64,000 bases of DNA from NCBI RefSeq assembly GCF_964194025.1, contig NC_134468.1, positions 22,878,001 through 22,942,000 of the forward strand, in the 5' to 3' direction. Numbering within the stretch: position 1 is the first letter of the stretch; each line of letters opens with the position of its first letter. The notes under the pieces are model-generated. The model did not search any database. It had not been told where the DNA came from and saw only the letters and a list, made by a program, of their open reading frames with translations. Of the stretch, positions 5,566-48,616 are shown in pieces. The translations under genes and the position numbers were made by a program. Origin of the DNA: Convolutriloba macropyga. Taxonomy: Eukaryota.

Positions 5566-5582
5566 TTTTAAATGACGTTCTG

Positions 5583-15940: not shown

Positions 15941-16420
15941 ATTTTTCAATTTAAAAGTTTTAGAATTGGTAAAAACCAATAGCACTCTCGGGTATCCTAA
16001 AGGGGTGAAATTTTTTGTCAAAATTCAGAAGTTCTTACTAGTATACGAGAAATTGAAAAAAATGTCTATCAGAGACCGTATAAAATCTTTATATATGAAG
16101 TTTGACAAAAACATTTCAGTTCCTGATGAGTTCCGCAATTAAAACAGTGTTCAATATCTTCATTTTTTTACCTTGTAGAACTTCATTTTAGTTGTGATCA
16201 TTATTTTTTTGTTTTCATACGATCATTTATTTTCTGATTTGTTCATACCCAGTTGACGTTGAACCATCATGCCGATTTTCATTTCTAATTAAGTCTTATG
16301 AGCTCAAGAATCTTTGAATCAAGTTCAGTGTCGTCAAACTGACAAAGCATTACGGCGATACTTTATTGTTCTCACTAATTTATCAATTTTTGAAATTATT
16401 GATACAATACAGAGTTAAAT
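15941..16420 (+). repeat. Diverged ~500-bp direct repeat, copy 2 (copy 1 at ~785-1285)
   Basis: Same collinear blocks as copy 1; lies immediately after the pPolB stop. Confidence 0.8.
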
Positions 16421-16708
16421 TACTAATTTTTTAACTATTTTCTATTCAAATTGTGTTCGAACTTTTCACTTCAGAATTTTCTTATCTATAAACTCACACC
16501 AGTACAACTTTATTTTGTCAACTCAGTATTCGTTTATGGACTTTTTAAAGAAAGAACCACCTAATGTTTTTTATTTGATTAAAATATTGAGGAGGATTCT
16601 ACTCTGGTAGCCCTTAAAAGGGCTGAGTTGTATAGTTAGGAAAAATCTAAATCTCGTTTCTTTTTTCCAGAACTTTGTACCAATGGAGGAAGTTTTTTCC
16701 CTGCCAAA

Positions 16709-16972
16709 CTAATCCAAGCAATATGGGCACCTGGCCTTCATTTCAAAATTGCACTCGGCATAATTTTTTTTCCGACAATTTTTAGACTCACATTCAATGA
16801 GTCCACATTTCCTACAATCTGATGCTAGGTAACAGCATAGAATACATTGCTTCATAACTCTCCTATGTTTTTTATTTCGACGGCAGTTTTTAGTGTACTT
16901 CCTGGCACGGATCTGAGAAAGGTTTTCATTTTCCATTTTCAACAACTTTACTAAGTAGGGTAAATGAGACAA
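16709..16972 (-). CDS. Small basic, Cys-rich (Zn-binding?) ORF near the Polinton right end
   Basis: CILCC...CRKC...C...C...C...CPYC preceded by a K/R-rich segment; no ATG start. Confidence 0.4.
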   Translation of the reverse strand: MSHLPYLVKLLKMENENLSQIRARKYTKNCRRNKKHRRVMKQCILCCYLASDCRKCGLIECESKNCRKKNYAECNFEMKARCPYCLD

Positions 16973-17159
16973 CTGATTTTCCCTCTATGAACGTATCTTT
17001 CAATCAATTTATCATAATAACAATGTATTGGCGGAAAACATTTACTACGTCTATTCTCTTCTCCAATTAACAACTCTATTCAATACTTAATGGAATCTTT
17101 TGTTTGTATACAGACAGATAGTCTCTTCAATCTGTCAAAAAATATCAATTTAATCACGT

Positions 17160-17241
17160 CAAGTTATAACCCCTTAAAAGCAAACGGATTAATGACCGGC
17201 TCCCAAAAATGCGCGAGATCTACTCACACTATACTACTACT
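17160..17241. repeat. Probable right terminal (TIR) end of the Polinton
   Basis: A short GC-richer patch (gaccggctcccaaaaatgcgcgagatc) is followed by tactcacactatACTACTACT, about 1.3 kb downstream of pPolB. The partner TIR is not in the window, so the TSD (next 6 nt gcggtt) cannot be confirmed. Confidence 0.65.
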
Positions 17242-18377
17242 GCGGTTATCTTGGATTTTGTTTTCTTTGTCGTCTAATCTTTTGCCTTTTACATTTGCTA
17301 ACGCAGAACGTTTTAAAATATCAATTTTGTTTACCGTTTTTTATGCAGTTTTTTCTCTGATTTGTTGCTAAATTTATGTTTCGTACGCTGATTTATTTTT
17401 ATCATACCAAACTTAGCTCGCTCTTTGGCAGTGTTATAGCAATCTGACTGCTATGTTGAGTTATAAAGTTACGATAAGTTTTTCCGAAAACGGTCTCTGA
17501 CCGAAAAAATTTTCGGGTCACAGCAAAATGACCAAAACACCTTGCTTTTCGTCAGTCCTTGTCACTAAAATTATACAGGAAACAGGTTGTGTTGACTTTT
17601 GACCAATTTTAGTGAGAAATTCAATGAACGAAGAAGTTAATGGTTAAAAGATCAGCGATTGAAAAATTGTTTTCTCAAGCATGTCAAGTGGCATTGACCT
17701 AAAAATGCACCGCTACAAATTTAGATGCCGGAAATAAATTTATGTGGTTATGTGTGTGCCTGCATTTTCCTTCTGTTTGTTTTGTTTTTCCATATTTTTC
17801 TTTGCTGCGCAATCTTGTTGATCTGAAATGCATCAAGTTTATCTTTTGATGACTTAATGCCAATAATAAATAGTATTTAATGTACTACGTATTTTCAGTG
17901 TTCCATAGAACACTCTTTCTTAATGATGGCTGTTAGTAATGATTTGCTGCTGTAAGTAATGAATGACGGCTGCCTTTCGCACTGAAAACATTAGAGGTTA
18001 TTAAAATCGTGTTTTATTTATTTCTTGTGAAATCGGTTCTCGCTGAACACAACTTTGTTCATTGATTTCTCCCTGCCAGTGATCTTTATTTACGAGCAAA
18101 ACCTCCTTCACTAATCGTGTTGCGATCTTTCAGTTTATGTTCCCGTTTTTAAAATTTTCCACCACTGTTTTTCCTGTCTATCCTCTTTTCTTTATTTATT
18201 TCTTTTTCGCTTTCTTTCCTTCTTTCTTTCTTTCTATCTCTTCGTCTTTATTTATTTTCTGTTTTCATTTTTTTCTCTGTAACCGTTTTTTTCTTGCTTT
18301 GCTCGACGATTTGAGTATCTTCTCCCTTTGTTTCTTTTCATTCTCGCTCTTTTTTAACTTTCTTTCTCTCATTGTCT

Positions 18378-18577
18378 NNNNNNNNNNNNNNNNNNNNNNN
18401 NNNNNNNNNNNNNNNNNNNNNNNNNNNNNNNNNNNNNNNNNNNNNNNNNNNNNNNNNNNNNNNNNNNNNNNNNNNNNNNNNNNNNNNNNNNNNNNNNNNN
18501 NNNNNNNNNNNNNNNNNNNNNNNNNNNNNNNNNNNNNNNNNNNNNNNNNNNNNNNNNNNNNNNNNNNNNNNNNNNNN
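18378..18577. other. Assembly gap (200 N) inside a pyrimidine-rich low-complexity tract
   Basis: Run of N. Confidence 0.99.
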
Positions 18578-20645
18578 TCCTTAAGTTGTCTTTTTAATGT
18601 ATTGCCGTTTTTTCTTCCAGCTCTCAATTTTTTTTTCACTTCATCTTTGTTTTTCCTTCAAAGTTTTGGCGTGACAGGGATTTTGGTCCAAATATTCTCA
18701 AATTCTGCCTGTTTTAGTGTTAATGAGAAAAAGAGACAGTCCATGAAACAATTCAAATTATTCAAGGATAGTCAATGAGAAAATCAACGAAAAATTTGAA
18801 ATAACTTTAGATCAAAAACCCCTTTTTTTAAATTCAGCTGGTTGTAATGCCCTCAGTTTACATGTGATACTGAGATTTATTTTCCTCATATACACGAGTT
18901 ATCATAAACCCGTTTTTAATAGAGAATATCTTTTACAGTTTTGGAATAGAGTTCATTCAGATAGCTGCTAGTTACCAATGAAATTATTAATGGTTGCTTA
19001 ATTTAATTAAAGCTTATAGTGAAAACAGGAATAATGTCATCTTGCTCATACTTGTTATTAAAATAAGGCGCAGTGTTATGACCAAAATAGCAGCAACTCC
19101 AAGTCAATCATGAAAACTAACAGAAGCGTAGTTTGAGTGTTGATATCTTGGAAAGTACAGTTTTATGGTAGGGTAAAATGATTGCTGTATTTTTTTTGCT
19201 TGCTTAAATGTGATTGGACAGAATTTAAAATCTAGGAAGGTCTTCTTACCAAAAACGTTTGGTTTTTTTATGTGAAAATAAGTTGACTGATTGAAAATTT
19301 ATTGATAGAAAAAAATTGAATTAAAATTTTTATATAATTAAATATTTTATAATGGATAAGGTCATACTAGGTCCATTATTAATCTGAAGAATTGAGACAT
19401 TGATTAGTCAGAAACTTGATAGATAATAATAATGAGAAAGTTATAACAGTGCGCAAAAACATACTACCATTCCTCCTTGTGAACAGGGATTTTCATAAAT
19501 ATCTTTTTTATCTGAGAAAGTATGCTCCCATACGTCTTAAACTGTAAACCGCTGCCCAAAATTGGGTTTTTCCCCTATACCTAGAATTGCTTGATATGTT
19601 GATAATCAAAGGCAAGTTTACTGCAAAAACAATGCGTTTCTGAACCTTGCAATAATATAACAAGACAGCAGAACCGCGGTCACTTCAAAATCGAAACAAA
19701 AACAGGTTGCGAACATCAGACGACAACTTGTTATGTTGTTCAAAAATACTTCATAGCTTTACATTTAAAAATCCGAAAGCTGGCGACAAGCTCAACAAAA
19801 TATCAAAGACTTACTGGCACTGTCTTTTATTCTCCTTCAATTCAAATGGCAAATGCACATTGCGTATTGTATATATATGTGGAAATTGGAGTCCTTGGAA
19901 AAAAATAATGTGTATGGACTAACAAACGAGGGTGCAGACCACCCGTGGGTATAAGTGATAACCAGAATCCTTAACTACTAGCACTGCTTCTAGTACTATA
20001 GCCCCCAATTATGGTATTATTACTAACATTGGGGGGTCTATAGGTTATCTGACCACTAATCTTGGGGGAAAGGGCTATCATGGGAAGGAATCTTAAAATC
20101 GTTGTCATGGTGAACATCCATCTTAGAAAATTGAGATTATGTACGTACCACTCGTTGACATTTTTAATTAAGAATTTTGAAAGTCATCAAAAATCTAGTT
20201 CCGTTTCAATTAAAAATTTTATATTTAAAAAAATACATACCAGACAATAAGACAGACAGGCATTTTACCTAAGTTCACTTCAAGTATTATTGGATAGGAG
20301 TCATTGAAAAAAAAAGTCTTTGGACAGTTAAAGATGGGATCTTTTATGTTTGTGCCCCCCAGTACGTTATGCATCCCCCGCAGTACGTTATGCACCCCCC
20401 CCCCCCTTACATGACACGTGTCGTTACAAGCCAAATAATTATGTAAAAATGCAGCAGGTGCGTCCGGGGTTTTGTAGTAGTAGTAATATAAGACTTCATT
20501 TCTTTAGAGGCATTAAATATTGAATAAATTCAGAAAATGAACTCGGGGGAAGGTCTATCATGGGAAGGACTCTTAAAATCGTTGTCATGATGAACATCCA
20601 TCTTAGAAAATTGAGAATATGTTCATACCACCTGTTGACATGATC

Positions 20646-22570
20646 AACAGGACGGTGTTGAACTGCCAAAATTTGTCCTGGAAGTCTTATTCTTAGGTCC
20701 AAATTATCCGGTTAGTGACAAAATTAATGAAGTGCACTTCCTTGCGGATGTAGACAGATTAGTTCGTGAGTTAAGGGAGAACAACATTGAAGGTGAAAAG
20801 TTATCTGAATTAGAATCGTCCGCAAAATGGTACGCCAAGAATGTACGTGAGACTCAAATGGATAGAAGGGTTAAAAAAGCTAATGCTTTTTTGAAAGATC
20901 AAAAACTACTAGCTGTACCCTTTGATAAAGGTTTTGGTTTTTGTGTTATGAAACAGACAACATACTTGGATAAACTAAATAAAATTCTCAGTTCCAGTCA
21001 GTTTGAGCCTCGTTATGGAGAAAGTTATGATCTAACAATAAAAACGGGGAACTCATAAATAGCAGTTTGCACCAATTAATGAAAAAGGGAAAGATAAGTG
21101 AAAAGATTTATCAAAGGCTCAGGACAACTGGATCGCAACTGCTCAGGCTTTATGGACTTGCTAAAGTACATAAAAGCGGTACTCCGCTTCGGCCTGTTCT
21201 GTCAATACCTGGTAGCAGTTACAAGATCCTCAATAAGTTTCTCTCCTTTTTTCGAGAGGTTATCAGGCGCAGATATTGAAAAAAACTCGAAAGATGAGCT
21301 AGTTGTATCTCTCGGTGTTAAAAACTTATACACAAAAGTACCAAGTGAGGAGGCAATTGAAATTGCGCTTAAAGAACTGTACTCCAGTGACGAGATACCT
21401 GAGATTCCGAGGTCAGCGATGAAGAGCCTTTTCAGACAGGCCTTAGATAATGTTTAGTTTAAGTGTAATAAAATGTGATACACTCAATCGGACGGTTTAG
21501 CAATGAGTGCTTCGCTGGCTGTAATTTTGGCAAATTGGTAAATGAAATCTTTGATAAATCTTTAAAGAAACCAAATGAAGGAAGGGAGAACAAAACTCCT
21601 GACACAAAGATGATATGCATTGACTGTAACCGACGCGTTACTTTCCGAGGGAAAAGGGTCGATTGCGAATCATGCAAAAACTGGTTTCATGCAAAATGCC
21701 AAGATATCATTGGCACAGAGTATATGACCATGCAGGATATTGTTTGGATTTGTTCCTATTGTGCAGAAAAAGGTACAAAAGAGGACATAAAGGAATTGAA
21801 ATTATTCAAGAGGTTTGTAGAGGACATAGTGTGCGCCGTCAAGGGAAACCCTCTAGATTACCTTGAGTTTGCATATTCTCTTCACAAGAACACACTTCAA
21901 TCTTGAGACAACAGACGGTAGTGGAGACCTGGCATTTCTAGATCTAAACATAAACGTAAACGAAGATAGGAAAATAAGCTGTCATTGGAATCAAAAATCC
22001 ACCGATACTGGCATAATCCTAAATTGTCGCAGCTGTGCACCGTTACAACTTTAAAAAAATGTGATGCAAGGGACTGTGCATAGGATTGTTAGTGCGACCA
22101 GTGGCTGGCAATCATTTGAACTAGCTCTCAAGCAAAATCAAGAGATCTGGACCGAAAATCAATATCCAACAGAGTGGTCCTCCAGTTATGTTCACGAGAC
22201 GTGTGATAAAATAGTCACGAGGGAAAAGGTCACAACAAAACTCCCAAAAATGAACAACATCACAAAAAAGTTAAAAGTCTCAACAATAAGGAGCCTAAAT
22301 TGAGGTTTTTTGTACAATCCAGAGGAAAAATTACTCAAAATTTTGCAAGTCGACTGAAAAAATTGTGTGATATTCAAATCATTTTCACATTAAGAAAGCT
22401 AAGAACTTGCTTGCCCACCCTGAAATAATCTTTTGATAAAATGTGAAATCCTTTGTGGTATATAAAGTTACATGTAATAGATGCAGTTCGAACAATGTTG
22501 GCCAAACCAGCTGACATAATACCAGTAGAATTTCGGAGCATCAAAAGAAGGATTCTCCAGTGGAAATTCA
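20646..22570 (+). mobile_element. Penelope-like retroelement fragment, copy 1: RT with in-palm PHD finger plus GIY-YIG endonuclease start; decayed
   Basis: AVPFDKG.GFCVM; RLYGLAKVHK..TPLRPVLSIPGS; VSLxVxxLYTKVP; YTQSDGLAMSASLAVILAN; PHD; LFKRFVEDI (YVDD motif); LAFLDL; QKSTDTG..LN..S.AP; ENQYP; VVYKVTCNRCSSNNVGQT...RISEH. Confidence 0.93.
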
Positions 22571-22999
22571 AAAATTATTCTGGTAAATGTTAATTCGAAA
22601 TTTTGACAACTCCAACAAGTAAAAATAAAAACAGATTGATAGGAATGAAATTAAAAATTCCTTTTCAGAAATAGAAAGCAATATACCCGGGATTTTCAGA
22701 AACTCCGGAATAAAAACTCGGATCTTTTCCGTTTGTGCCCCACAGTACGTTAAGCTCCCCCCAGTTAGAGCGCACGTGCCATTACATAGTAAATCATTAT
22801 GTAAAAATGCAGCACGTGCGTCCGGGTTTTGTAGTAGTAGTATAAGACTTCATTTCTTTTGAGGCATTAAATATTGAATAAATTCAGAAAATGAACTCGG
22901 GGGAAGGTCTATCATGGGAAGGACTCTTAAAATCGTTGTCATGATGAACATCAATCTTAGAAAATTGAGAATATGTTCATACCACCTGTTGACATGATC

Positions 23000-24960
23000 A
23001 ACTGGACGGTGTTGAACTGCCAAAATTTGTCCTGAAAGTCTTATTCTTAGGTCCAAATTATCCGGTTAGGGACAAATTGAATGAAGTGCACTTCCTTGCG
23101 GATGTAGACAGATTAGTTCGGGAGTTAAGGGAGAACAACATTGAAGGTGAAAAGTTATCTGAATTAGAATCGTCCGCAAAATGGTACGCCAAGAATGTAC
23201 GTGAGACTCCAATGGATAGAGGGGTTAAAAAAGCTGATGCTTTTTTGAAAGATCAAAGACTACTAGCTGTACCCTTTGATAAAGTATTTGGTTTTTGTGT
23301 TGTGAAACAGACAACATACTTGGATAAACTAAATGAAATTCTCATTTCCACTCAGTTTGAGCCTCGTTATGGAGAAAGTTATGATCTAACAATAAAAACG
23401 GGAAACTCATAATTAGCAGTTTGCACCAATTGTTGAAAAAGGGAAAGATAAGTGAAAAGATTTATCAAAGGCTCAGGACAACTGGATCGCAACTGGCCAG
23501 GCTTTATGGACTTGCTAAAGTACATAAAAGCGGTACTCCGCTTCGGCCTGTTTCGTCAATACCTGGTAGCAGTTACAAGATCCTCAATAAGTTTCTCTCC
23601 TTTTTTCGAGAGGTTATCAGGCGCAGATATTGAGAAAAACTCGAAAGATGCCAGCGCCGCCCTAGAGGATATCAAATTGGATGAAGATGAGCTAGTTGTA
23701 TCTCTCGAGGTTGAAAGCTTATACACAAAAGTACCAAGTGAGGAGGCAATTGAAATTGCGCTTAAAAAACTGTACTCCAGTGACGAGATACCTGAGATTC
23801 CGAGGTCAGCGATGAAGAGCCTTTTCAGACAGGCCTTAGATAATGTTTAGTTTAATTGTAATAAAAGGTGATACACTCAATCGGACGGTTTAGCAATGAG
23901 TGCTTCGCTGGCTGTAATTTTGGCAAATTGGTAAATGAAATCTTTGATAAATCTTTAAAGAAACCAAATGAAGGAAGGGAGAACAAAACTCCTGACACAA
24001 AGATGATATGCATTGACTGTAACCGACGCGTTACTTTCCGAGGGAAAGGGGTCGAGTGCGAATCATGCAAAAACTGGTTCATGCAAAATGCCAAGATATC
24101 ATTGACACAGAGTATAAGACCATGCAGGATATTGTTTGGATTTGTTCCTATTGTGCAGAAAAAGGTACAAAAGAGGACATAAAGGAATTGAAATTATTCA
24201 AGAGGTATGTAGAGGACATAGTGTGCGCCGTCAAGGGGAACCCTCTAGATTACCATGAGTTTGCATATTCTCTTCACAAGAACACACTTCAATCTTGAGA
24301 CACCAGACGGTCGTGGAGACCTGGCATTTCTAGATCTAAACATAAACGTAAACGAAGATAGGAAAATAAGCTATCATTGGAATCAAAAATCCACCGATAC
24401 TGGCATAATCCTAAATTGTCGCAGCTGTGCACCGTTACAACTTTAAAAAAATGTGATGCAAGGGACTGTGCATAGGATTGTTAGTGCGACCAGTGGCTGG
24501 CACTCATTTGAACTAGCTCTCAAGCAAAATCAAGAGATCTGGACCGAAAATCAATATCCAACAGAGTGGTCCTCCAGTATTGTTCACGAGACGTGTGATA
24601 AAATAGTCACGAGGGAAAAGGTCACAACAAAACCCCCAAAATGAACAACATCACAAAAAAGTTAAAAGTCTCAACAATAAGGAGCCTAAATTGAGGTTTT
24701 TTGTACAATCCAGAGGAAATATTACACAAAATTTCCCAAGTCGACTGAAAAAATTGTGTGATATTCAAATCATTTTCACAACAAGAAAGCTAAGAACTTG
24801 CTTGCCCACCCTGAAATAATCTTTTGATAAAAATCTGAAATCCTTTGTGGTATATAAAGTTACATGTAGTAGATGCAGTTCGAACAATGTTGGCCAAACC
24901 AGCTGACATAATACCAGTAGAATTTCGGAGCATCAAAAGAAGGATTCTCCAGTGGAAATT
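23000..24960 (+). mobile_element. Penelope-like retroelement fragment, copy 2, same architecture
   Basis: Same motifs; retains ASAALEDIKLDED (absent in copy 1) and RYVEDI; 1-bp deletion inside the PHD. Confidence 0.93.
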
Positions 24961-25111
24961 CGAAAATTAATCTGGTAAATGTTAATTCGAAATTTTGACA
25001 ACTCCAACAAGTAAAAATAAAAACAGATAGATAGGAATGAAATTAAAAATCCCTTTTCAGGAATAGAAAGCAATATACCCGGGATTTTCAAAAACTCCGG
25101 AATAAAAACTC

Positions 25112-28600: not shown

Positions 28601-29797
28601 GCGACCAAAAAATTCGTACCCTGGGTTTAAATACGTAAGAATGATCCGGAAAATCCGATTTTCCCGCAATTAGTGCTTTCTGAATTCATTGGATTTCGGA
28701 GTCATGAGTTTTTGCTACGCTTTTTCGGTTTCGCGTCATGAATTTGCTTCAATTTTAATCTCCATGTTGATCAAGCTAAAAAAAAGGGTCTTTGCCATTA
28801 TAGCCCCCAGCTTAGTGGTCAGATAACCTATAGCCCCCCCCCCCCCCAATCATGGTATTTATACCATAATGGGGGGGCTATAATGGGAAAGACCAAAAAA
28901 AGAATAGGCACTGGTGAAATCAGTCTCAAAATGTGAAAGCATAAAGAGACATCCGTCCAGTCGACTGCTGTCCTGGCTTTTCTGGCTCACCAATCCCATG
29001 AAAGATTAAATGTTTTTTTGTTTCTATTCTCTCTGGTTAGAGGACTAAGCACCATCCTACCTTCGTTTAATGGATCTACTCTTCCTTCTTCGTTCCGGAG
29101 TGCCTTTTGTGCCCCACTTACAAATGATATATTGCTATTTACCACGTTGCTACGTAAAAACGTAACATGTGCGAATGCAGGCGTAAAAGTTGTATGCCCA
29201 CTAAGCTGGTATCCTTAATAGTGTGGACGGTTAGTCTGACGTCAGGCTTTTGTTTGGCTATTTACTATTTTTTTGCTGAAAACAAGTCAGTTGTTTTCTT
29301 CGACAGTCAGCTTCTGCTCTTCTGAGGAATTGATTCGCAAATCTAGGTCGCTAAGGAGGCGCGAAATTGTTGATACTTTAATAAGAGTTGTTGTGAAGAA
29401 GGGAGGCTTAGTTTAACTTGCCTTGTGCCTTTATTATGTGTGCTGTTAATCCTTTACCTTCATGTATTCGTAGTTTTTCTTAAAAACTATATTTATCCTT
29501 TATTGATAGATTGAGAATAAAACCAAATGCTTTCTGAAGACGTTAGGAATCAAGGTTCAATTTTCAACCCGCTAGCAAAAAGTTGCCCTGAAAGCAGTAG
29601 CGAAGCCTACAAGTTTCATGAATCTATCAAAAAGAACAAGTATGAACAAAGAATAACAGGTTGAGAAAGCAACATTCTGTCCGCTTGTCTTCGCATGCAC
29701 TGGTGGAGCTGGCCCATCAGCTTCAAAAGCGCTGAAACAACTAGCATCAAAGCTCTCTGCGCGAAAAGAAGACAGCTACGCTGATATCATATCATAT
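25658..29797 (+). repeat. Tandem duplication of a ~2.1-kb composite unit (25658-27749 / 27750-29797)
   Basis: Near-identical copies starting cggaaaagatcctaaagatctc; the junction at ~27749 cuts the CRE 3' fragment (atcatatc|cggaaaag vs atcatatc|tacggac). Confidence 0.93.
26730..26845. mobile_element. ~100-bp MITE with TIRs GGTCTTT(G/C)CCA(T/C)TATAGCC; related copies at ~19993-20092, 25947-26040, 28033-28127, 28786-28894
   Basis: gggtctttgccattatagcc ... ggctataatgggaaagacc; copies occur in both orientations. Confidence 0.75.
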
Positions 29798-29932
29798 CTA
29801 CGGACAAAAATCAGCTTTGCTCTCCTGAGGAGTTCCATCCTCTGCATTCGCGGGTCAAGGACGCTTAGGCGGCGCGAAATTGTTGATGCTTCGATGGGAG
29901 CTGTGGTTGAAGAAGGGAGGCTGTTAGTTTGA
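29545..29932 (+). mobile_element. 3' end (RLE domain) of a CRE-like non-LTR retrotransposon; truncated duplicate at ~27500-27749
   Basis: HESIKKNKYEQRI..VEKATFCPLVFACTGGAGPSA...LRTKISFALLRSSILCIRGSR...EEGRLLV*. Confidence 0.85.
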
Positions 29933-30154
29933 CCCATCCACTTTCGTCATTAGTTGTTTGTTTTCTAATGCTGTCTGTCTTTTGTTTTTCTTCCTCAGTT
30001 GATGTTTATATATAATAATTTTATTGATAGATTTAATCAATACGAAATGCTTTATGAAGACGTAGTGCTGGGAGGGCCCCCGGGCCAGCCAATATTCACC
30101 CAGTGTTGGGGAGGGGCGTTTGTTAATTTACTTTTTTTCTGAAGACGTTGAGCT

Positions 30155-30272
30155 AGAAGCCCGGACCAAACAATATTAACCCAATATTGGAGAGGAGTGC
30201 ACAAAGTAGTACTACAACTACTTTATGCACTCCTCCCCAATACTCAGTTAATATTGTGTGGTCAGGGCTTCT
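30155..30272. repeat. Imperfect ~55-bp inverted repeat (foldback) upstream of the lipase-GTPase gene
   Basis: agaagccc-ggacca-acaatattaac-..tattgg.gaggagtgca.aaagtagt / actacttt.tgcactcctc.ccaata..-gttaatattgt-tggtc-gggcttct with a 6-nt loop. Confidence 0.85.
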
Positions 30273-30543
30273 TGGTCTAACTACTTTGTGCTTGAGATTT
30301 AAAGTTTGTGCATAATTTACTGATTAGTCTTCTGCTGATAGCGCCGAAGCAAGGTGACATCGTTCTAGAAAAAAACTGTAAAATTAATCTCATCGGCGTA
30401 ATCTTGATGGTGAGAATTCAGAAAGACGAAGGAACAAGAATCTCTTTATTACGTGTACGACATCTATAAAGGCTAATAGGATAGGAAGTCCAAAGAGTAA
30501 GTGTTCTAGGTTTTTATGCGCTTTGTTTTGTCTGCGCGGCAGA

Positions 30544-33500
30544 ATGAGCGATGAAGTTGTTGTTCAATTCCGTGGGCAAACACAAACGTTGGACATCGAC
30601 GATTTGACCTCTGATGATTTGAAAGAACATTTTGGGCTGGAGTTTGAAGTCAAACAATTAGTTGAAGTCTCTTCTGGAAAATCCATACTGCTCAAAAAAA
30701 CAGAAAAATTTAAAGCTGGTTATACTTACGAGATTAGAGAGCCACCAACATCTGGCGGAACGAAATCAGAAAAACAGGTCAAAGACCTCTCGAACTGGCT
30801 GCTGAAAAACAAAAACACTGTCCAGAATGCCCTTGTTGCCAGTGCTGCCACCTATCAAGAAAACCCGGAGATTTACCTTGTAAATTCAATAATAGATCAC
30901 AATTTGAAATCCCTTGTGGTATCTGCATGTGGTGATTGTTCCTTTCTAATAGCCGAAGAGCTTAACTCGAATTCAGTATACATTGCATTTCGAGGAACGG
31001 AGACAATAAATGATGTTAAAGAAGATCTGAAGATATACCAAAAAGCGGCTTCGCAGGGGCTAGCGCATGGAAGATTTCACGCTGGGTTTCTTTCGCGTGC
31101 CGAAATGTTTCCTCTTGAGAAAGTTTTGATGAGTGATCTAGTAAGAAATAAATCCCTGATTCTCTGTGGTCATTCTCTTGGTGGTGCTATAGCTTCTATT
31201 GTTGCTACTAATATTCTTCTCGAAAAAGAGCGGATGAAAAATCAACATATCAGCAGCGTAATAAATATAACATTTGGTGCTCCACTATTTGGCGATGACT
31301 CTGTTAGAAATTTCTTAATTGAGAAAAATATCGACTCTTGTTTCTATCATATTGTTGCTGAAAACGACCCTGTGCCAAGTTTGTTGTCGTTTACGCAGAG
31401 TATATCTGCAATGAAACACCAAGTGGATAAGCAAGTAAGTCAGTTAGTCTCAACTGTATCGACAGTTGCCGGTCAAGCATACGTGGAGGAGAGAAAGCAA
31501 TCTTTGATGGCAACGAAAGAGAGTTACGTTGGTTATTTATCGAAAATCGAACCCTTTCTATCGCCAGCACTGGACGTTGCTTGTGTAGTGTACCCTGCTA
31601 ATGCAGTATTTTTGAGAGGAGTTAAAGAGGGTCTGGATATGTTGACAAAAAGTATGGACAAGTCGACTGAATTAGAGGTTTCCCAGAAGTACGTCCCCGT
31701 TGGGAATTTTTTCTTTCTCTGTGATGAATTTTTGTTCACAAAATGCTTTGAAAGCTCTGACGTCGGTAGCATAACCCAGTCTTTGGACATCCTGAAAAAT
31801 GCGAAATTGAGTTCTCATGAGCCGCATAAGGTTGTAAACTACATGAGAATGTGTAAATACAACAAATGTTTTCAACCCGGGGGCTACCCTCCTGATGAAA
31901 TTACTTACTTGCCATTTGATGATGGAGCTCTTACGGTTCACACCTGTCCCAGAACTATCCAAGAAGTTTTAATCTTTGATCCAAAACTGCACAGCATTGA
32001 ACTGGCCACTGTCAAATGTCAAGACGTCACTCAGTTGAGGCTAGTGCTAATAGGGGAAAATTTGTTTCAAATTTATCTTCCTAGGTGCTCATTTGATCTG
32101 GGCTTTCCATTTGGCGTTTCTGAAAAGTCAACTGTCAAAAAAATTTCCATGGGAGATAAAATCGAAAAACTTGTTATTGAACAAGAGGTTAATGTGAATG
32201 AGCTTAGTATCTCCGACCACGGATCCAAGGTCAAAGTCGCGACTCAGTTCGGGTTTGCAGAAGGAATTCTTCCTCGGAACAACATCAGGAATATTGAGGT
32301 ACAGTCTGTGTCACAAATTTCAAAGCACGAGTCAATTTCCTTGGTGGTTCGAAAATCCGTTCAACGTGGAATGGCGCTTTCTCAACTAAAGAACAAAAGT
32401 TCTCTCAACGAACCATTAGTTTCTGAAATTTTGAACCTTGCAGCAAAGTGCCTTGAAGCCCAAGATAATCAAAAGCTGCTTGATATGTTTGACGACAAAA
32501 CAAAGAATGTCCAGTTTGTTCTGAGTAACGAGCAGGAGTACAAGAAAGTTCGAGACATATGCGACAAGATTGAAAAGTACATGATGAGTCCTCTGGAGTT
32601 GAACGCAGAGAAATCGACCCTTCAGGTTATATCAGTGGGTGCGTTGGCTGTACTAGGAGGAAGTGCCTTGGCCTACATGGCAGGTCCAGGGTTGCTTTTA
32701 GTGGGAGCAATAGAAGCGCTTAACATCACGGGAGTGGGGACAGCTGCTGCTTTTGGAACTCTTGGTACAGGGTATGTTGCCAATCGTTGGCTAACACAAG
32801 CTGTCGCAGACCAAAACTACATTCAAGTTTTAAAGTTCATCAAGGCTGAACTCTTCCGAGTTTGGAGTGAGAGGGTAAAAGATACGGACCCTGAGTTGCT
32901 GCAGCGTGTTTCGGATCTCTCTAATGATGATACAGTTTACAGTAATGAAAAAGCACTGCTTCTAATGTACGACAAAAATCTAGGAATATTCAACTTCGAA
33001 GGTAGTGGACTTGAAAACTGCACTGACGCCTCAAAACAACAATTATTGCGACGCATTGAGTGCGTCGAAGTTGTTCACAGAATTAGGGACATCCTTGCCT
33101 CTCAGTGTTTTATTGGTATTGTCGGGCTCCAGGATTCGGGTAAGACTACCCTTCTTAACAAAATCTGGGGCTTTAAAGGAAGCACTGGCCTTTTTGCACA
33201 CACCGATGTACCAGTTATGCATCAAATATCACGGAAAGTGCACATAATTGACTTCCCTGGAAGTAACAGCTTAGATTACCATGCTAAGACATTCAGTATC
33301 TGTGGTGCCATGAATAACATGATTATTGTTCTTGTGCCTTTTACTGGTGATGTGAGCGACATTGTCAGCCGCGAGTTAGCTAAAGTTTATGAAGCTATGG
33401 TTGGATCAGAATCTTCTAGAATTATAATTTGTGTAAACAAAACTGGAATGCATCTAATGAAGCTGCGCGAAGAGCTTAGAAATGAAGAGAATCCTATTGA

Positions 33501-33750
33501 CTTTATGAAAGAACGTTACATTACGAAGTTGAACGAGCATTTTACTGATAGAAAAATTAAAATGAAGAAAGAACACATTTTCTTCACAGATTGGGAAGCA
33601 GGTCAAGAAGCGCGGGATTTTGGGATCGAGGGAATTGACGCAATAAAAGACGTGATAAAGCAGCATCTGATTGAGCTCAATGTTATTAGTAGAATGGCTG
33701 TTGATGAACTTGAGCAGGCGGTTGCTCCACCACAAGAGCCTAAATCGTGA
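30544..33750 (+). CDS. Intronless multidomain protein: class-3 (EDS1/PAD4-like) lipase + probable IPT/Ig-like domain + Gly-rich hydrophobic hairpin + C-terminal TRAFAC P-loop GTPase
   Basis: YIAFRGT, FHAGF, GHSLGG (Ser 31174), ITFGAP, NDPVP (Asp), YVPVGNFFF, HKVVNY (His); PKLHSIE...LVLIGENL; GALAVLGGSALAYMAGPGLLLVG...GVGTAAAFGTLG; G1 GLQDSGKT, G2 HTD, G3 DFPG, G4 NKTG. Intact ORF of ~1068 aa. Confidence 0.92.
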   Translation: MSDEVVVQFRGQTQTLDIDDLTSDDLKEHFGLEFEVKQLVEVSSGKSILLKKTEKFKAGYTYEIREPPTSGGTKSEKQVKDLSNWLLKNKNTVQNALVASAATYQENPEIYLVNSIIDHNLKSLVVSACGDCSFLIAEELNSNSVYIAFRGTETINDVKEDLKIYQKAASQGLAHGRFHAGFLSRAEMFPLEKVLMSDLVRNKSLILCGHSLGGAIASIVATNILLEKERMKNQHISSVINITFGAPLFGDDSVRNFLIEKNIDSCFYHIVAENDPVPSLLSFTQSISAMKHQVDKQVSQLVSTVSTVAGQAYVEERKQSLMATKESYVGYLSKIEPFLSPALDVACVVYPANAVFLRGVKEGLDMLTKSMDKSTELEVSQKYVPVGNFFFLCDEFLFTKCFESSDVGSITQSLDILKNAKLSSHEPHKVVNYMRMCKYNKCFQPGGYPPDEITYLPFDDGALTVHTCPRTIQEVLIFDPKLHSIELATVKCQDVTQLRLVLIGENLFQIYLPRCSFDLGFPFGVSEKSTVKKISMGDKIEKLVIEQEVNVNELSISDHGSKVKVATQFGFAEGILPRNNIRNIEVQSVSQISKHESISLVVRKSVQRGMALSQLKNKSSLNEPLVSEILNLAAKCLEAQDNQKLLDMFDDKTKNVQFVLSNEQEYKKVRDICDKIEKYMMSPLELNAEKSTLQVISVGALAVLGGSALAYMAGPGLLLVGAIEALNITGVGTAAAFGTLGTGYVANRWLTQAVADQNYIQVLKFIKAELFRVWSERVKDTDPELLQRVSDLSNDDTVYSNEKALLLMYDKNLGIFNFEGSGLENCTDASKQQLLRRIECVEVVHRIRDILASQCFIGIVGLQDSGKTTLLNKIWGFKGSTGLFAHTDVPVMHQISRKVHIIDFPGSNSLDYHAKTFSICGAMNNMIIVLVPFTGDVSDIVSRELAKVYEAMVGSESSRIIICVNKTGMHLMKLREELRNEENPIDFMKERYITKLNEHFTDRKIKMKKEHIFFTDWEAGQEARDFGIEGIDAIKDVIKQHLIELNVISRMAVDELEQAVAPPQEPKS

Positions 33751-34313
33751 TGTCAAACCGATTGCTGTACAGTAGATGGCTGCCGTAAAATATTTAACAG
33801 AAACTTTTATCAACTTTTTTCTGCCAAATGTCATTAGTTTAGTATCCATTGCTGAAAGCTACTACTTTACATGTGCTGAGCACGACTAAATTCCTCAATC
33901 AGTTATCAATATCTTATCTTCAATCCTGACTGTTGCTTGCCCTTATTCTCTCTGAATTACTAACTTATTCTCTCTTTCCACTCTGAATTACTAACAAATA
34001 TTGCTAGAACCTAGCTTTGTCTATGCAGCCATTTTAAAATCCTATTTTGATACACAAATTTTTGAAATTTCTCAAATTCAATTTATTCAAACCTTAATTT
34101 TTACCCTATTAATTGGTTTCATTTCAATTATTTCGTTGCAAACGATTCAGCTGAATAAATTAATTAGTTAACTCCTTGCAGTGACAATAGGTTCCATATT
34201 ATCTACATAAATGCAGAAACAATTAAAATGAGAGAACCTGCAGAATCGGTTTATAGAATGAACACTTTGCTTAACTTGAACAAGTTTTCTTTGATTCATC
34301 AATACAGGCATCT

Positions 34314-34640
34314 TCAATTACTCTCGAACGAAGTTTGACGCAATTATTCTTAATGAAATTTTTCCTTGACTTTTTTGAGCGACTCTTATCGCGTTCATCT
34401 TCTTAATTTTAAGGTAATCTACTTTGCTCTCTCTCATTCCCAAATTTATGTAACTGAACTCAAGTGACGGCAGTTTACTACTAGAAGTGTACTAGAGATT
34501 ACTACAAAATGAAAATGCTACTACCCCCCCCCCCCCCCCACCGGCTAATTTACCCCCACCCAAGCAAAGTTAACTAAAATTGATCACCCACCGGTCGTTC
34601 GAGAGCACTTTGTCCTGTTTTAGTTGGTTGTTCTTGGTAA
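34314..34640 (+). mobile_element. HINE-like (non-autonomous Helentron) family B copy
   Basis: 5' subTIR aattactctcgaacga, short inner IR gcaatta, 3' subTIR tcgttcgagagcactt followed by a degenerate hairpin. Confidence 0.6.
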
Positions 34641-36272: not shown

Positions 36273-37436
36273 TGTTGATGCTTTATTTACTTCTTACGGT
36301 CATTGTGCTTTACCACCTTTTTTGTAAGTTGATTTGCTTTCCCAAAAATTGTAAAGAAAAAAAAACCATGATGATGAAATGTTGAAAAAACCGTAAATTA
36401 TGTTCTTGCTTAAAATGTGTAAATTAAGAAACAAAACATGTGCAACCAAACGAATTGAAGCTTAAAGCTATTATTAAGAATCAAGAAAGATAACAACCTA
36501 TCCCTGTTCTGAAGGCAGACCAGCCGAGCCATTATGTGTTAATATGTAAGCTCAAACCTCCTTCTGCTCCTCACTTGGCGGGGTGTGGGAGAGGCTCGTT
36601 CAGTGTGTTAAGCGAGCTATTCTTTTAAACCTTGGTTCTGCAAAACACTCCAGATGTCTTTGCCACAATCGTCAGCGAAGCCGAGTGCATTGTCAACTCC
36701 TGTCCACTCACCCACGTGAGAAGTAGCCACGAAGACGACAATCCGCTAACGCCAAACCACTTCTTTTTTGGAAGGCTCTTCTGCAACGTTCCCGGAGCCG
36801 TCTTCAACGAGACACTGACCCTGAAGAACTCGGCCTGGACGTAGGTGAAGAAACTGCAGCAGATTTCAATGAGACTGATAACCGTGTATGTCCCTTCGCT
36901 GAACAAGCGACCGAAGCGGACATCTCGCGAAGCAGCATTGGGAGTGAACGATGTCGTCTGGCTTCTCGAGGATTTCACTCCCAGAGCAATCTGGCCCCTG
37001 GGACGAGTCACACGGATTTTCAACGGCTCCGATGACATTGCTAGGTCATGTGAAGTTAAGAACGCTTTTGGTAATTTAACTATACCTGCGGTTGAGCTGG
37101 TGCATGCTTACACCAAGCCCACACCAAGGTTAAGATTAGGTTTTGTGGGCCCGGAGGATGTTAATGCTAAAGATTAACTCTTCTTACGTTCATTAGGCTT
37201 TACTGCTTTTTCGTAAGTTGATTTGCTTTCCCAAAGCAGAAGTTGTAGCGAGAAAGCTATGATGGCGATGAAATGTTGAAAAAACCGGAAATTATGTTCT
37301 TGCTTCAAATGTGTAATTTGAGAAACAAAACATGTGCAACCAAACGAATGGAAACCTAAAGCTAACATTAATAATCAAGAAATATAACGACCTATCTCCT
37401 TTCCCAAGGCAGACCAGTGGAGCCATAGCGTTATCA
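36273..37436 (+). mobile_element. BEL/Pao LTR retrotransposon remnant: integrase C-terminus + DUF5641-type tail between two diverged LTR-like repeats (36273-36542, 37159-37436)
   Basis: PPSAPH.GVWERLVQCVKRA; EAECIVNSCPLT...PLTPNHF; RAIWPLGRVT...GSDDIARS; PPT-like ggcccggagga then TG...CA; the two LTR-like blocks align throughout. Confidence 0.88.
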
Positions 37437-41261: not shown

Positions 41262-42818
41262 ATGACAAAAATGAACGAAGATAATCAAAATACTGGATTG
41301 CTGAAACCTATCAGTAAAAATATTGACCCTCCTAAGCAGCCGGTACCTGAAAGTTCTTGTCACAAAGATGAAAATAGGTCATCATCGCGATCTTCAAGTA
41401 GCGGTGAGCGATGTACACGGAAAAGAAGATACCCAGAAAATGGCAGGACCAGAAATGAAAACAATCGCTCAAAAAGACAATGCAATTTAACAGCCGAAGA
41501 CGTGAAAAAAGCGGCTGCTGAAATAAACGATCCGAAGAAGAACAAAATTGAACCCGAAGACAGACTTGAAAAAGCAGGCGGAAAACTCCAGTTCGAGCGT
41601 GACTTGAAACGTCTGGGAAATTTAAAGAAAATTGGAACTTCTGCCTTCTCGTGGGAGTTAACGCATAAGTTTGTTGAAAACCATGCTCTAGAGAAGCACT
41701 TTGAAGGCATCAAATATCAGCCGCATCCTATTTACGGAGTTCATATTGCTCCATTTACCGTAGCCAACCTGGAAATACCTGCAGAACCACAATACCTAAT
41801 AGCCACAACAGGGGGAAAGTGGATCTATGTCTATACGTGCACGGAAACATCAAAACTGAAGTTAATACAAGTTTACACTGACCCTGGTGATGACATGTAT
41901 TACAACGTGAAATTTACTAAATATGACGACACCATTTTTCTAGTTAGCGCTGGTAAAAACGGGACAGTTAGAGTTATTAATGTAGCCAAACGTGAAGTTG
42001 ACCAGTCATTTGAAGGTGCTGCGAATGCTATCAACGACATCCAAATTCATCCCAAAATTCCCGAAATAATTGCTCTGGCCTCTCAAGATATGTCAACACA
42101 TTTGTGGAATTTGAAGTCCCAAATGCAAATTGCTATTTTCAGTGGACGAGGCTTAGAAGGGCACAACGATCAGGTGTTGACCAATGACTTCAACGAAGAC
42201 GCGACTAAAATGTTATCATCAGGCATGGACCATAACGTTATCATCTGGGATTTGGTGGGTCCCAATGGAGTCGAAAAAGAAATTGAAATGTCGTATGACT
42301 CCTCGATCAAAAATGAGAACAGACCTCGCCTGCCAGTGTGGCGGCATTTTGTATACCTCAAATGCTCGAGCATCCATCGAAATTATGTTGATTGTGCCAA
42401 GTTCTACGGCGAAACAATAATATCTAAAAGCTGTCATAGCGATGGAAAACTTTGTGCCTGGATGCCAACAAAAATTGCAAACGATGTCGCGCCTGTCAAA
42501 TCACAGGTTGACCTGCTGTTTCAGTACAAGTTTTCATCGGACAAAATGGTATGGTTTATGAAGTTCTGCTTTGACCCGACCAAGCGGTTCTTGTCAATCG
42601 GACATATTGACGGAAGAGTTATGATAGTGGATCTTCACAGCTCTTATGACCCAACTGACCTTAGAGTTTGTTACATGCAAGGTAAATCAGATAGACAGAC
42701 GTATATCAGGGAAACTTGCTTCTCTCCCGACGGCAAATTCCTGATTTCAGTAGACGAATCAGCCAAAGTGTTTAAATATAACATTAAGAAAGCGGACCCT
42801 AGTCCAATTCAGTGGTAA
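41262..42818 (+). CDS. EED: Polycomb PRC2 subunit EED/ESC (WD40), single coding exon, divergent
   Basis: PIYGV; YTDP..DMYY; AGKNGTVRVIN; NAINDIQIHP; ASQD.STHLWN...IAIFSG..EGH.DQVL..DF; SSGMDH; IHRNYVDC; ISKSC; VWFMKF; IRETCFSPDG. Confidence 0.92.
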   Translation: MTKMNEDNQNTGLLKPISKNIDPPKQPVPESSCHKDENRSSSRSSSSGERCTRKRRYPENGRTRNENNRSKRQCNLTAEDVKKAAAEINDPKKNKIEPEDRLEKAGGKLQFERDLKRLGNLKKIGTSAFSWELTHKFVENHALEKHFEGIKYQPHPIYGVHIAPFTVANLEIPAEPQYLIATTGGKWIYVYTCTETSKLKLIQVYTDPGDDMYYNVKFTKYDDTIFLVSAGKNGTVRVINVAKREVDQSFEGAANAINDIQIHPKIPEIIALASQDMSTHLWNLKSQMQIAIFSGRGLEGHNDQVLTNDFNEDATKMLSSGMDHNVIIWDLVGPNGVEKEIEMSYDSSIKNENRPRLPVWRHFVYLKCSSIHRNYVDCAKFYGETIISKSCHSDGKLCAWMPTKIANDVAPVKSQVDLLFQYKFSSDKMVWFMKFCFDPTKRFLSIGHIDGRVMIVDLHSSYDPTDLRVCYMQGKSDRQTYIRETCFSPDGKFLISVDESAKVFKYNIKKADPSPIQW

Positions 42819-45959: not shown

Positions 45960-48616
45960 AGATTGTGCAATCCGCGAAGTTCACCAAATCTAGCTGCAAC
46001 AGACATAAATCTAAATGAACTCCCAGATCTCGAAACCATCAGCAGTAAGCACATCCCTACCCTAAGGTTCATTCCAACAAAGTTTCGGGTGAGATGGTCA
46101 GAATTACTAACATCCGTTATCGATGCTTGCATTTCACACGCGCAATTGTTAGAAAATTGGAAAAAACTCTTTGCTATTAGCAAATGTGTTCTACGCGCGT
46201 CTAATCGTGGGGGTAAGAAACACAAGCAGCAGCAAGAGAAACAGTTGCTTAGCAGACTTGAACGGCGGAAATCAGGTGATTATGCTGCACTGTGGTACGA
46301 GGCGGCCTCAATGAAGCAGTCAAATTAAAATAGCATTGAGTCAATAGACGCTTTAGCAAGCCGCGCGAAATCTCTTTGCCTGCAGGGGCAGTTTGGGAGG
46401 GCAGCGAAAGTTCTGTCTTCTGACGGCGTCGCACCTGACAATGCTGCAACGTTGAATGAACTTAAAAAGCTGCACCCTAAGGAAAAGCAACCTGATCCCC
46501 AATCTGATCAAGATGCTAACACAAACGCAATTCAATTTGACGAGGCATCAGTATTCTCCCAAATCGAGTCGTTCTCCAAATTTACTGCAGCTGGGCCGTC
46601 AAAAATGTATCCCGAGCATCTGCTGCATGCAGTAAACTGTGGTGCCCCTGATCAGTCAAAGCGAGCAATCACTAGCTTAACAAAATTCGTCAATTTAGCC
46701 AGCAGGGGTCACCTTCCCGAATTCGTTGCTCCTATACTATGTAGTGCAACACTAACTGCATTGAAAAAGGTGGGGTTTGTCCTATCGCTGTTGGGGAAGT
46801 CATTCGGCGTCTTATTGCTAAATGCATAGCTCGTGAAGCGAATTCAGAAGCTGCTGATCTATTTAACACAAAACAATTGGGAGTAGCAGTCAAGGGTGGT
46901 GCTGAGGGGATAGTACACGCAACAAGAGTTTCCTTTGAAAAACTGCAAATATCAAAAAATTCCGGAATATTGCAGATTGATTTCAGAAATGCCTTCAATT
47001 CGGTAAAAAGAAGCAAGGTTTTGGAAGCAGTCGCAAAATTCTTACCTAGTGGTGCCCCTTTTGCGACTTTTTGCTACTCACAACACAGTCATTTGCATTT
47101 TAACAACACATACTTAAGTAGCCAATCGGGAGTTCAACAAGGGGATCCTTTGGGGCCGCTTTTGTTTTCACTAGCTCTGTGGCCAATCTTTAAAGAAATT
47201 GAAACAACATTACCAAATCTAGTGCAGCATATTTGGTATTTGGATGATGGCATCCTTGCTGGTACTCGCCAACAACTTTGCAAAGCATTGAATTTGTTGA
47301 CAAATTTGGGTGAAGGATGCGGTTTAGAGCTCAGAATAGAAAAATGTGAGCTTTGGTCACCCGCTGATCTGAACGCTATAGATAACAGAGTAAAGAGAAA
47401 TAGCAAAGAAGGACTTGAGATCTTGGGCGCTGCCATCGGCAATCCCAGCTTTGTTGCTGCTTCTTTGAGAAAAAGAGTCAACAAAATAGAAAAACTACTC
47501 GACAACCTGGCGTATCTAGACGACCCGCATTGTGCGCTTGGAATTCTTCGAAGCTGTCTTGGTGCCCCAAAAATGGTATATTCCCTGCGATGTAACACTC
47601 CATCTGACGAATCCTGTTATTTTGCAGAATTTTGACAACCTTCAGAGAACAACATTTGAGAATATGTTAGGCACCGTTATAAGTGACAGCGCTTGGAAGC
47701 AGGCTTGTCTACCAATAAACAAAACTGGCGTTGGTATTAGACAAGCAGTTGACCAATTGAAAGCGGCGTTTGTTGGGTCAGTATCGCAAGCAGACGCTTT
47801 AGTAGAACAAATAACCGGTGAGAAAATTACAGACAACCAAATTTTCAAAGAAACAGTGGAAGAACTGAAGAATCTAGAAATTAGCCAATATACACAACAC
47901 AAGATTCAGGAGGCACTTGACGATGCTGCTTTTTCTGACCTTCTTGGTAATCAGAATTCAAATCGGGAGAAAGCTCGTTTGCTTTCACTAACATTGCCTC
48001 AATCTGGTGCGTGGCTTTCCGCACCTCCAATCCCTAGTCTGGGCCTTCACCTTCAGCCAAATGAATTCAGAGCCGCATTGAAGTATCGGATTGGTGTTCC
48101 GTTATACATAGAGGAACGAAAATGCCCTTACTGTCAAAACGGCAGACTGGACAAGCTGGGTGATCACGCTTTAAGCTGTCATGGTCGGGGGGATATGATA
48201 TCGCGGCACGATAGAGTGAGGGATAGAATATTTGCTGCTTGCTCGACCGCAAACTTATCACCCGTCTGCGAACAGAAAAATTTGATTCCAGATAATCACT
48301 CAAGGCCAGGAGACATGTACTTGCCCAGCTGGTCAGCGGGACAACCATCTGCGTTAGACGTAACCATAACTTCCCCACTGCAGCCCAGTCTAATTTCAGA
48401 TGCGGCGAGGAGTTGTGGTTTTGCCCTGACAAATGCTGAAGATAGGAAATATGAACAATATGCCCAAAAATGTGCCGAAATAGGTACCCAGTTTGTATCA
48501 CTCGCGTTTGAATCTTTCGGGGGCTTCTCAGATTTGGTTCGTAAAACTTTGAAACGTATAGCCTTGCTTGCCGATAACCGAAACTTTCAACCAGCTGGTT
48601 TATCAATTGCATACAA
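45960..48616 (+). mobile_element. CRE-clade (RLE-type) non-LTR retrotransposon: RT + CCHC knuckle + restriction-like endonuclease; frameshifted, 3' end missing
   Basis: AAGPS; PIAVGEVIRRLIAKC; QLGVAVKGGAE; IDFRNAFNSV; GVQQGDPLGPLLF; WYLDDG; CPYC..DKLGDHALSC..RHD; RPGD; ALDVTITSPLQ; KYEQY; AFESFGG. Confidence 0.93.

Follow-up and report, generated by a model that had tools for sequence, protein, structure and literature searches.

The lipase-like domain of the plant proteins EDS1, PAD4 and SAG101 has a class-3 lipase fold, proteins of this family form heterodimers to which TIR-made nucleotide signals bind, EDS1 has a long stretch between the Asp and the His of the triad, and, to our knowledge, the origin of the EDS1/PAD4 domain is unresolved. 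In animals, the sn-1 diacylglycerol lipases DAGL-alpha and DAGL-beta are membrane-bound class-3 enzymes of ~1000 aa whose catalytic domain contains a regulatory insert; they begin with four transmembrane helices and lack a G domain. GM4951, whose structure is among the closest to the G domain described below, is a lipid-droplet GTPase (PMC12749288), and acoels lack canonical immune signalling pathways (PMC12849515). In this study, we analyzed a stretch of 64,000 nucleotides from the acoel Convolutriloba macropyga (RefSeq assembly GCF_964194025.1, contig NC_134468.1, positions 22,878,001 to 22,942,000 of the forward strand; hereafter the window), which holds at 30544-33750 (+) a gene, here called the window gene, encoding a class-3 lipase, a putative membrane hairpin and a divergent G domain in a single chain.

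We propose, at a rough probability of 0.55, that the product is a nucleotide-switched membrane lipase held by its central hairpin and a core member of a eukaryotic family. A protein combining an intact class-3 lipase with a putative membrane hairpin and its own G domain is conserved over a range that runs from cnidarians to cephalochordates and includes a chromerid alga, and no description of such a family or architecture was found in the searchable papers.

Results

A class-3 lipase with a conserved triad

The window gene was found to be an uninterrupted open reading frame (ORF) of 1068 aa on the + strand (30544-33750), with its ATG at 30544, an A at -3 and a TGA stop; the same frame is open from 30523 (+), upstream of this ATG. 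The public annotation of the gene model is "uncharacterized protein" only. All motifs listed in the original prediction, which had been made from the DNA letters, were recovered at their places (GHSLGG, NDPVP, HKVVNY, YVPVGNFFF, PKLHSIE, LIGENL, GLQDSGKT, DFPG and NKTG). Two AlphaFold models were built on 17-sequence alignments, with overall predicted local distance difference test scores (pLDDT) of 72 and 73. The gene and the parts of its N-terminal half are as follows:

30544..33750, + strand: single-exon gene, 1068 codons plus TGA, from the ORF reading and an identical 1068-aa protein in public collections (P0001)
30544..30747, + strand: N-terminal domain of ~68 aa, beta-beta-alpha-beta-beta-beta, model pLDDT 86-91, kept in acoel, Hydra and amphioxus members
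30781..31878, + strand: class-3 lipase domain, aa 80-445, with the Pfam core at aa 146-281, from Pfam, profile and fold searches
31174..31176, + strand: Ser211, nucleophile in GHSLGG (aa 209), present in 17 of 17 sequences and in nearly all of the 39 family rows with a lipase part
31366..31368, + strand: Asp275 in NDPVP (aa 274), invariant
31372..31650, + strand: three-helix insert between Asp and His, aa 277-369, with model helices at 277-304, 310-349 and 351-369, of low confidence (pLDDT 51-63)
31825..31827, + strand: His428 in H-x-x-x-N-Y (HKVVNY, aa 428), invariant, with a below-threshold alignment to the His region of EDS1

The Pfam profile Lipase_3 (PF01764) matched aa 146-281 with an E value of 8e-21 (74.8 bits against a cut-off of 22), and the domain has the alpha/beta-hydrolase fold of fungal-lipase type. 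The GxSxG nucleophile and the Asp and His of the triad are present and conserved family-wide, as judged from sequence alignment only, and the strand motif YVPVGNFFF lies at aa 383. The class-3 lipase with a full triad (Ser211/Asp275/His428) that had been predicted was thereby borne out, and the lipase of the window gene is probably an active class-3 serine lipase. In front of it, the order of strands and helix at aa 1-68 agrees with a ubiquitin-like beta-grasp at pLDDT ~90, an agreement read from the order of elements in the model with no sequence match; a profile search of the PDB with the N-terminal 80 aa returned no match. The beta-grasp-like start proposed earlier therefore has the model on its side and no sequence match in the PDB.

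A predicted beta-sandwich, a putative membrane hairpin and a helical stalk

Behind the lipase, the protein continues with the following parts:

31984..32271, + strand: six-strand beta-sandwich, aa 481-576, model pLDDT 65-89
32308..32586, + strand: helical region, aa 589-681, from the model
32620..32799, + strand: double hydrophobic segment rich in Gly and Ala, with an AGPG turn at its centre, aa 693-752, putative membrane hairpin, from hydropathy and the conserved Gly and Pro
32800..33102, + strand: helical stalk or bundle preceding the G domain (long helix plus bundle), aa 753-853, from the model

The motifs PKLHSIE and LIGENL, at aa 480 and 502, had been taken for an IPT/TIG-like part. A six-strand beta-sandwich is indeed modelled there, but TIG (PF01833) had no match in the 17 family members at E<=5, and aa 476-690 had no Pfam match, no PDB profile match and no usable feature match in the atlas.

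The double hydrophobic segment was confirmed at aa 693-752. Kyte-Doolittle means over it reach 1.86 and, outside the buried strands in the cores of the lipase and the G domain, no other segment of the protein is strongly hydrophobic; the hydropathy profile has no signal-like hydrophobic segment at the N-terminus. The family member of the alga Chromera has a matching Gly/Ala hydrophobic segment. The protein would be inserted into a membrane through this hairpin.

A divergent G domain of the TRAFAC class

The C-terminal part carries these features:

33106..33723, + strand: divergent TRAFAC G domain, aa 855-1060, from Pfam, profile and fold searches
33124-33147, + strand: G1 GLQDSGKT, aa 861, invariant or nearly so
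33250-33261, + strand: G3 DFPG, aa 903, invariant or nearly so
33436-33447, + strand: G4 NKTG without the Asp, aa 965, from motif reading
33583-33594, + strand: FTDW, after the strand that follows G4, invariant

The switch-I residue is Thr887, again invariant or nearly so. Several Pfam GTPase families, including SRPRB and MMR_HSR1, matched aa 857-986 at ~1e-5, and a small-GTPase fold was found together with G1, the switch-I Thr and G3, as in TRAFAC proteins. In place of the [NT]KxD of G4, the family has C-x-N-[KQ]-x-x with no Asp, and Chromera has THCD. SRPRB (PF09439) scored 25.5 bits against a cut-off of 25, with SR-beta in the PDB at E 0.0065; the 1068-aa context and the tied fold matches argue against SR-beta orthology.

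In the fold search, IRG proteins and GIMAP2 were among the top matches of the G domain, their Z scores tied with those of Rag, EngB, SR-beta and Arl, and mitofusin appeared among the Foldseek matches (9e-5 to 3e-4). By language-model features, the G domain is nearest to MMR_HSR1/IIGP/AIG1 clusters (0.89-0.91), and neither the IIGP (PF05049) nor the AIG1 (PF04548) Pfam profile matched at E<=1. The predicted "TRAFAC GTPase" thus holds at the level of the class (G1, switch-I Thr, G3 and fold), while membership among the IRG or GIMAP proteins does not hold.

A eukaryotic family with a fixed order of parts

The same order of parts was found in Symsagittifera roscoffensis at 68% identity (with a second, different gene there), in marine metagenome and transcript sequences at 54-56%, in Hydra vulgaris LOC101241641 at 34%, and, at 36-40%, in many single ORFs of 850-920 aa from large contigs, those of Tara Pacific among them. 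Coral-type metagenome contigs carry family members, Branchiostoma (several genes) and the annelid Owenia have homologues with this order, and a copepod protein consists of the C-terminal module only. A further member, Chromera velia P0117 (1104 aa), aligned over 770 columns with an hhalign probability of 99.4% and shows, in order, a lipase, a Gly/Ala hydrophobic stretch, GPKNSGKT, DLPG and THCD. Chromera velia is an alga isolated from corals; P0117 is very long-branched, and its THCD keeps the Asp missing in the animal members. Transcript collections also contain relatives, among them one Tara MERC transcript with 56% identity, one entry of a Neocalanus transcriptome and one Trinity contig.

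No variation in the triad, G1, the switch-I Thr or G3 was seen among the 17 homologues down to 34% identity, and these residues are also kept in amphioxus, Owenia, Chromera and the C. macropyga paralogues; almost all members with a lipase part, including fast-evolving paralogues, retain the triad. With a profile of the C-terminal 593 aa, 1.84 billion representatives yielded only 458 proteins at E<=1e-3, and a Pfam scan of 20 long matches to this module placed Lipase_3 upstream in 14, the other 6 having the G domain only. In one genome per bacterial or archaeal species and in viral contigs, searches for the C-terminal module gave pattern matches only and no relative. The patchy distribution that the original prediction asked about was seen among animals; as to the horizontal transfer coupled to it, the bacterial and viral collections searched gave no relative of this module.

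Against the Symsagittifera orthologue (68% identity), the nonsynonymous divergence (dN) is 0.23 and synonymous sites are saturated. Since the synonymous divergence (dS) between the acoel orthologues is saturated, constraint is argued from dN and an upper bound only, with no dN/dS value. The most constrained parts are the hairpin (dN 0.09) and the G domain (dN 0.12). A tree built from the G-domain region places the window gene, its Symsagittifera orthologue and the marine sequences on short branches adjoining a Hydra/coral-type clade, and the C. macropyga paralogues of C16 and C1519 in a separate long-branched clade. Judged from these comparisons, the window gene is under purifying selection and is a slowly evolving "core" member of a eukaryotic family with a fixed domain order.

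Within the C. macropyga genome, 8 of 10 Lipase_3 loci belong to the family, and at least 5 further loci have the C-terminal module alone; the window gene itself is single-copy. Intact paralogue ORFs of 940 aa (C16) and 1010 aa (C1519) were found, with split copies on C16, and family copies are tandemly grouped on C3 and C16. At C3:813974-895000 (loci L002-L006) there are 4-5 tandem copies with ~40% identity to the window gene, several of which are interrupted by in-frame stops (TGA, TAA, TAG) or fall into two ORFs; in the NCBI annotation, pieces of them appear as individual proteins (562 aa and 356 aa), and one C3 paralogue ORF is identical to LOC142336765, an "uncharacterized protein" [Convolutriloba macropyga]. 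A 717-aa ORF on C2 (L007:442-2595 (+), ~1760448-1762601) has the hairpin and G domain of the family in its last 340 aa and no Pfam match in its first ~370 aa, making it a paralogue with a different front half.

Copy status and single exon

The window gene lies on chromosome 1 of C. macropyga, inside an 89-Mb chromosome, and its GC content is about that of its flanks. Contig depth over the ORF was even, at 33-61, across 4 DNA runs (2 samples), as for a single-copy sequence, and the ORF carries 9 single-nucleotide polymorphisms (SNPs) in these runs, 4 silent and 5 conservative, with no indel and no stop. Because of the even depth, the lack of indels and stops and the flank-like GC, it is a single-copy chromosomal gene of the host and not a contaminant; the possibility, allowed for earlier, that the sequence is contaminating DNA falls with its chromosomal position, host single-copy depth and intactness in all 4 DNA runs.

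Three linked heterozygous SNPs were seen at 33402, 33424 and 33454, and contigs over 33863-34456 have about half the depth of the ORF contig; two haplotypes appear to be present at the 3' end of the gene and in the region downstream. A contig was also found that links 30029 to 34045 through 37 other letters, in at least 3 of the 4 DNA runs and at about single-copy depth (46-68). A presence/absence allele of the window gene was considered and dropped: the gene looks homozygous, since the depth of the ORF contig equals the total at heterozygous SNP sites, and the joint is probably another locus that shares the flanking repeats.

The absence of introns had been read as a sign of retroposition or horizontal acquisition, a reading that did not survive comparison within the family. 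The Symsagittifera orthologue is a single ORF of 1076 aa, likewise adjoining a long-terminal-repeat element, and one long ORF is also the form taken by the C. macropyga paralogues and by distant members on genomic contigs; on reading the flanks of the window gene, neither a poly-A tract nor a target-site duplication was seen. Because orthologue, paralogues and distant members share it, the single exon is, on present comparisons, an old family trait under vertical descent rather than a mark of recent retroposition or transfer.

Flanks and neighbourhood

As predicted, the gene is the only intact long ORF amid remains of transposable elements (TEs): no other ATG-started ORF of at least 150 aa was found between 18.8 and 41.2 kb of the window, and TE pieces lie on its flanks. 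Two possible signals near the gene were read from the letters only:

30465..30470, + strand: TATAAA, possible core promoter, 74 bases 5' of the ATG
34154..34159, + strand: AATAAA, possible poly-A signal, ~400 bases 3' of the stop

Very high-copy repeats adjoin the gene at 29397-30184 and 34125-34518, where summed contig depth is 5,000-25,000 against 33-61 over the ORF, and a palindromic stretch resembling a miniature inverted-repeat transposable element lies at ~30150-30275. Upstream, a TE-like unit is duplicated in the same orientation (20639-21903 and 22993-23847), one copy having a PHD finger (E 3.6e-6). Downstream there is a fragment of DUF5641, a Pfam family of unknown function (36845-37174 (+), E 3.6e-11) that is known from BEL/Pao-type elements. 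The next intact gene-like ORF downstream of the window gene is a WD40-repeat ORF of 518 aa at 41262-42818 (+), and 46877-48767 (+) contains an RVT_1 ORF with a weak PIN-like ORF behind it. The DUF5641 fragment and the RVT_1/PIN-like ORFs are TE remains.

Discussion

Proposed working of the window protein

Because the protein has no signal peptide and, at its centre, a single double hydrophobic segment that turns at Gly-Pro-Gly, a hairpin would be its simplest topology, with the lipase side and the side of the stalk and G domain both in the cytosol, on the same membrane face, as in atlastin/mitofusin-type and lipid-droplet hairpin proteins. The nucleotide state of the G domain, relayed by the stalk, would then probably set how the protein associates with itself or how it is posed on the membrane, and this in turn would govern whether the lipase gains access to lipids in the cytosolic leaflet or in the monolayer of a lipid droplet. 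The strict conservation of triad, P-loop, switch-I and DxxG from cnidarians to chordates and in Chromera says that the lipase and G-domain activities are presumably both used, and, the fusion being constant, the two enzymes would act together. We infer both the lipase substrate and the nucleotide used.

Several points weigh against this proposal. The coupling of lipase and G domain is deduced from their constant fusion. The Asp that specifies guanine in G4 is missing family-wide, which makes the use of GTP uncertain. The hairpin is modelled at very low confidence (pLDDT 25-42, aa 700-752), and the sequencing runs that contain the gene are 4 DNA runs and no RNA run, its expression being presumed. 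When two copies of the G domain (aa 770-1068) were modelled as a homodimer, the score was 0.00, which speaks neither for nor against binding.

Alternative explanations

The foremost alternative is a dedicated effector of cell-autonomous defence or cell death, in which an IRG/GIMAP-like GTPase would bring an EDS1/PAD4-like lipase to the membranes of a pathogen, of a symbiont or of the cell itself and destroy them. For the window copy we hold this unlikely. The family is expanded in C. macropyga, with tandem groups, stop-broken copies and long-branched paralogues, and is patchily distributed among animals; the window copy, however, evolves slowly and has a 1:1 orthologue, which favours lipid or organelle work. 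The nearness of the G domain to MMR_HSR1/IIGP/AIG1 in language-model features and the presence of IRG and GIMAP2 among its top folds point toward defence, as does a lipase nearest to PAD4/EDS1 among solved structures, but the IRG fold matches are tied with Rag, EngB and SR-beta and no IIGP or AIG1 Pfam match exists. Acoels are without canonical immune signalling pathways, and mechanisms not yet known are to be expected in them (PMC12849515); yet, in the same work, 0 of the 29 C. macropyga genes responsive to Vibrio coralliilyticus were annotated with a lipase domain, in an experiment of low power. One transcript up-regulated under Vibrio there, TRINITY_DN31838_c0_g1 (PMC12849515, Additional file 5), matches uncharacterized proteins of S. 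roscoffensis and cnidarians and has no conserved domain; this is the taxon pattern of the window-gene family, a likeness taken from the description only. That the lipid-droplet GTPase GM4951 is among the closest structures to the G domain speaks for lipid work. Conserved handling of membranes or lipids is somewhat more likely for the window copy than a dedicated defence weapon, and defence remains a live option for the family.

More daring, and in our view improbable, is the idea that the family is the survivor of an ancient eukaryotic lipase-hairpin-GTPase protein, from which the EDS1/PAD4/SAG101 domains and the lipase domains of plant proteins of ~1016 aa descend, and which would serve animals without canonical immune signalling, such as acoels, as a nucleotide-gated, membrane-attacking defence enzyme. 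If true, it would link a central node of plant immunity with the cell-autonomous defence of animals at great depth.

A non-catalytic signalling scaffold in the manner of plant EDS1, whose lipase-like domain would be a surface only and which would sense a small-molecule signal, has in its favour that EDS1-family proteins are the closest solved relatives and that EDS1 keeps a triad it does not need; it is very improbable given that the window protein has no EP domain and that triad and GxSxG are kept in almost every member, in animals and Chromera and even in fast-evolving paralogues, which argues that catalysis is used. Scarcely credible, and largely refuted, is a recent retrocopy, horizontally acquired gene or contaminant, possibly silent: its single exon and the TE fragments and high-copy repeats on its flanks might suggest one, but the Symsagittifera orthologue is a single ORF and single long ORFs are the rule of the family, there is no poly-A tail or target duplication, the gene sits inside an 89-Mb chromosome at host single-copy depth with flank-like GC, dN lies well under saturated dS, and the bacterial, archaeal and viral collections searched gave no relative of the C-terminal module.

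Significance

As a nucleotide-switched lipase, the window protein would be a testable example of a built-in switch controlling an enzyme that attacks membrane lipid. The family bears on the origin of the EDS1/PAD4 domain, its lipase being the nearest non-plant relative among solved structures. Given that acoels are without the usual animal immune signalling (PMC12849515), an expanded family with broken copies in these animals is a reasonable candidate for a mechanism of defence or symbiont control. Should it instead serve lipid turnover at lipid droplets or organelles, it would represent a new class of regulator, parallel to the lipid-droplet IRG GM4951.

Comparison with known systems

With EDS1/PAD4/SAG101, the window protein shares the fold of its lipase, the best profile matches among solved structures (PAD4 2.5e-19, EDS1 1e-16) and the top structural Z scores among them (PAD4 21.8, EDS1 20-21). 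The blocks GHSxGGA and TFGxPLxG[DN] are common to both, and the strand Y-x-P-x-G-x-[FY]-x-F and the His that follows align below threshold. The original prediction had taken ITFGxPLxG as typical of the EDS1/PAD4/SAG101 family, which was not borne out: CGHSLGGA and TFG[AS]PL.G[DN] are carried by more than 536 viral, mostly giant-virus, class-3 lipases and are therefore not marks of EDS1. The Z lead of EDS1/PAD4 over fungal lipases is only ~2, and in the ESM Atlas the EDS1_EP cluster (template modelling score, TM, 0.44) is level with bacterial lipases (0.44-0.45). The window protein also differs in that the EP domain is absent (PF18117, no match at E<=1), that a beta-sandwich, a hairpin and a G domain follow the lipase, and that the triad is conserved throughout its family. 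An EDS1/PAD4-like lipase is accordingly right as a statement of the nearest solved structures, by a small margin; membership in the EDS1 family was ruled out for want of an EP domain.

The best shape matches in the ESM Atlas were streptophyte Lipase_3 proteins of ~1016-1019 aa (TM 0.56 and 0.53; 328 and 316 residues aligned), covering aa 80-475 with the range of the helical insert. They are also the nearest language-model clusters for the whole protein (0.81, a weak lead) and are similar in total length; unlike the window protein, they have Lipase_3 only in Pfam and do not figure in the listed rows of the C-terminal model. When word-indexed homologue searches were started from the lipase part or from the profile of the whole family, plant EDS1, DAGL and the ~1016-aa plant proteins were not reached, so that the plant link comes from atlas shape and feature matches only. 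This streptophyte group is possibly the At3g07400 group, named in the original prediction as an example of plant Lipase_3 proteins with a P-loop GTPase; in the papers searched, that gene was met in gene lists only.

From the IRGs (Irga6/IIGP1, Irgb6, Irgb10, GM4951) and GIMAP2, the G domain differs in having no IIGP/AIG1 Pfam match and no G4 Asp, in its fusion to a lipase and a hairpin, and in Z scores tied with Rag, EngB, SR-beta and Arl. DAGL-alpha/beta are membrane-bound class-3 lipases with an insert and differ in the layout of their transmembrane segments and in the G domain. The GTPases of the atlastin/mitofusin type resemble the proposed form of the window protein in a G domain with a helical bundle and a hairpin anchor that places both sides on one membrane face; here the domains run in reverse, the hairpin preceding the G domain, a lipase is added, and the sequence similarity is generic. 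The parts of the window protein are of known kinds, and what is new is their conserved combination.

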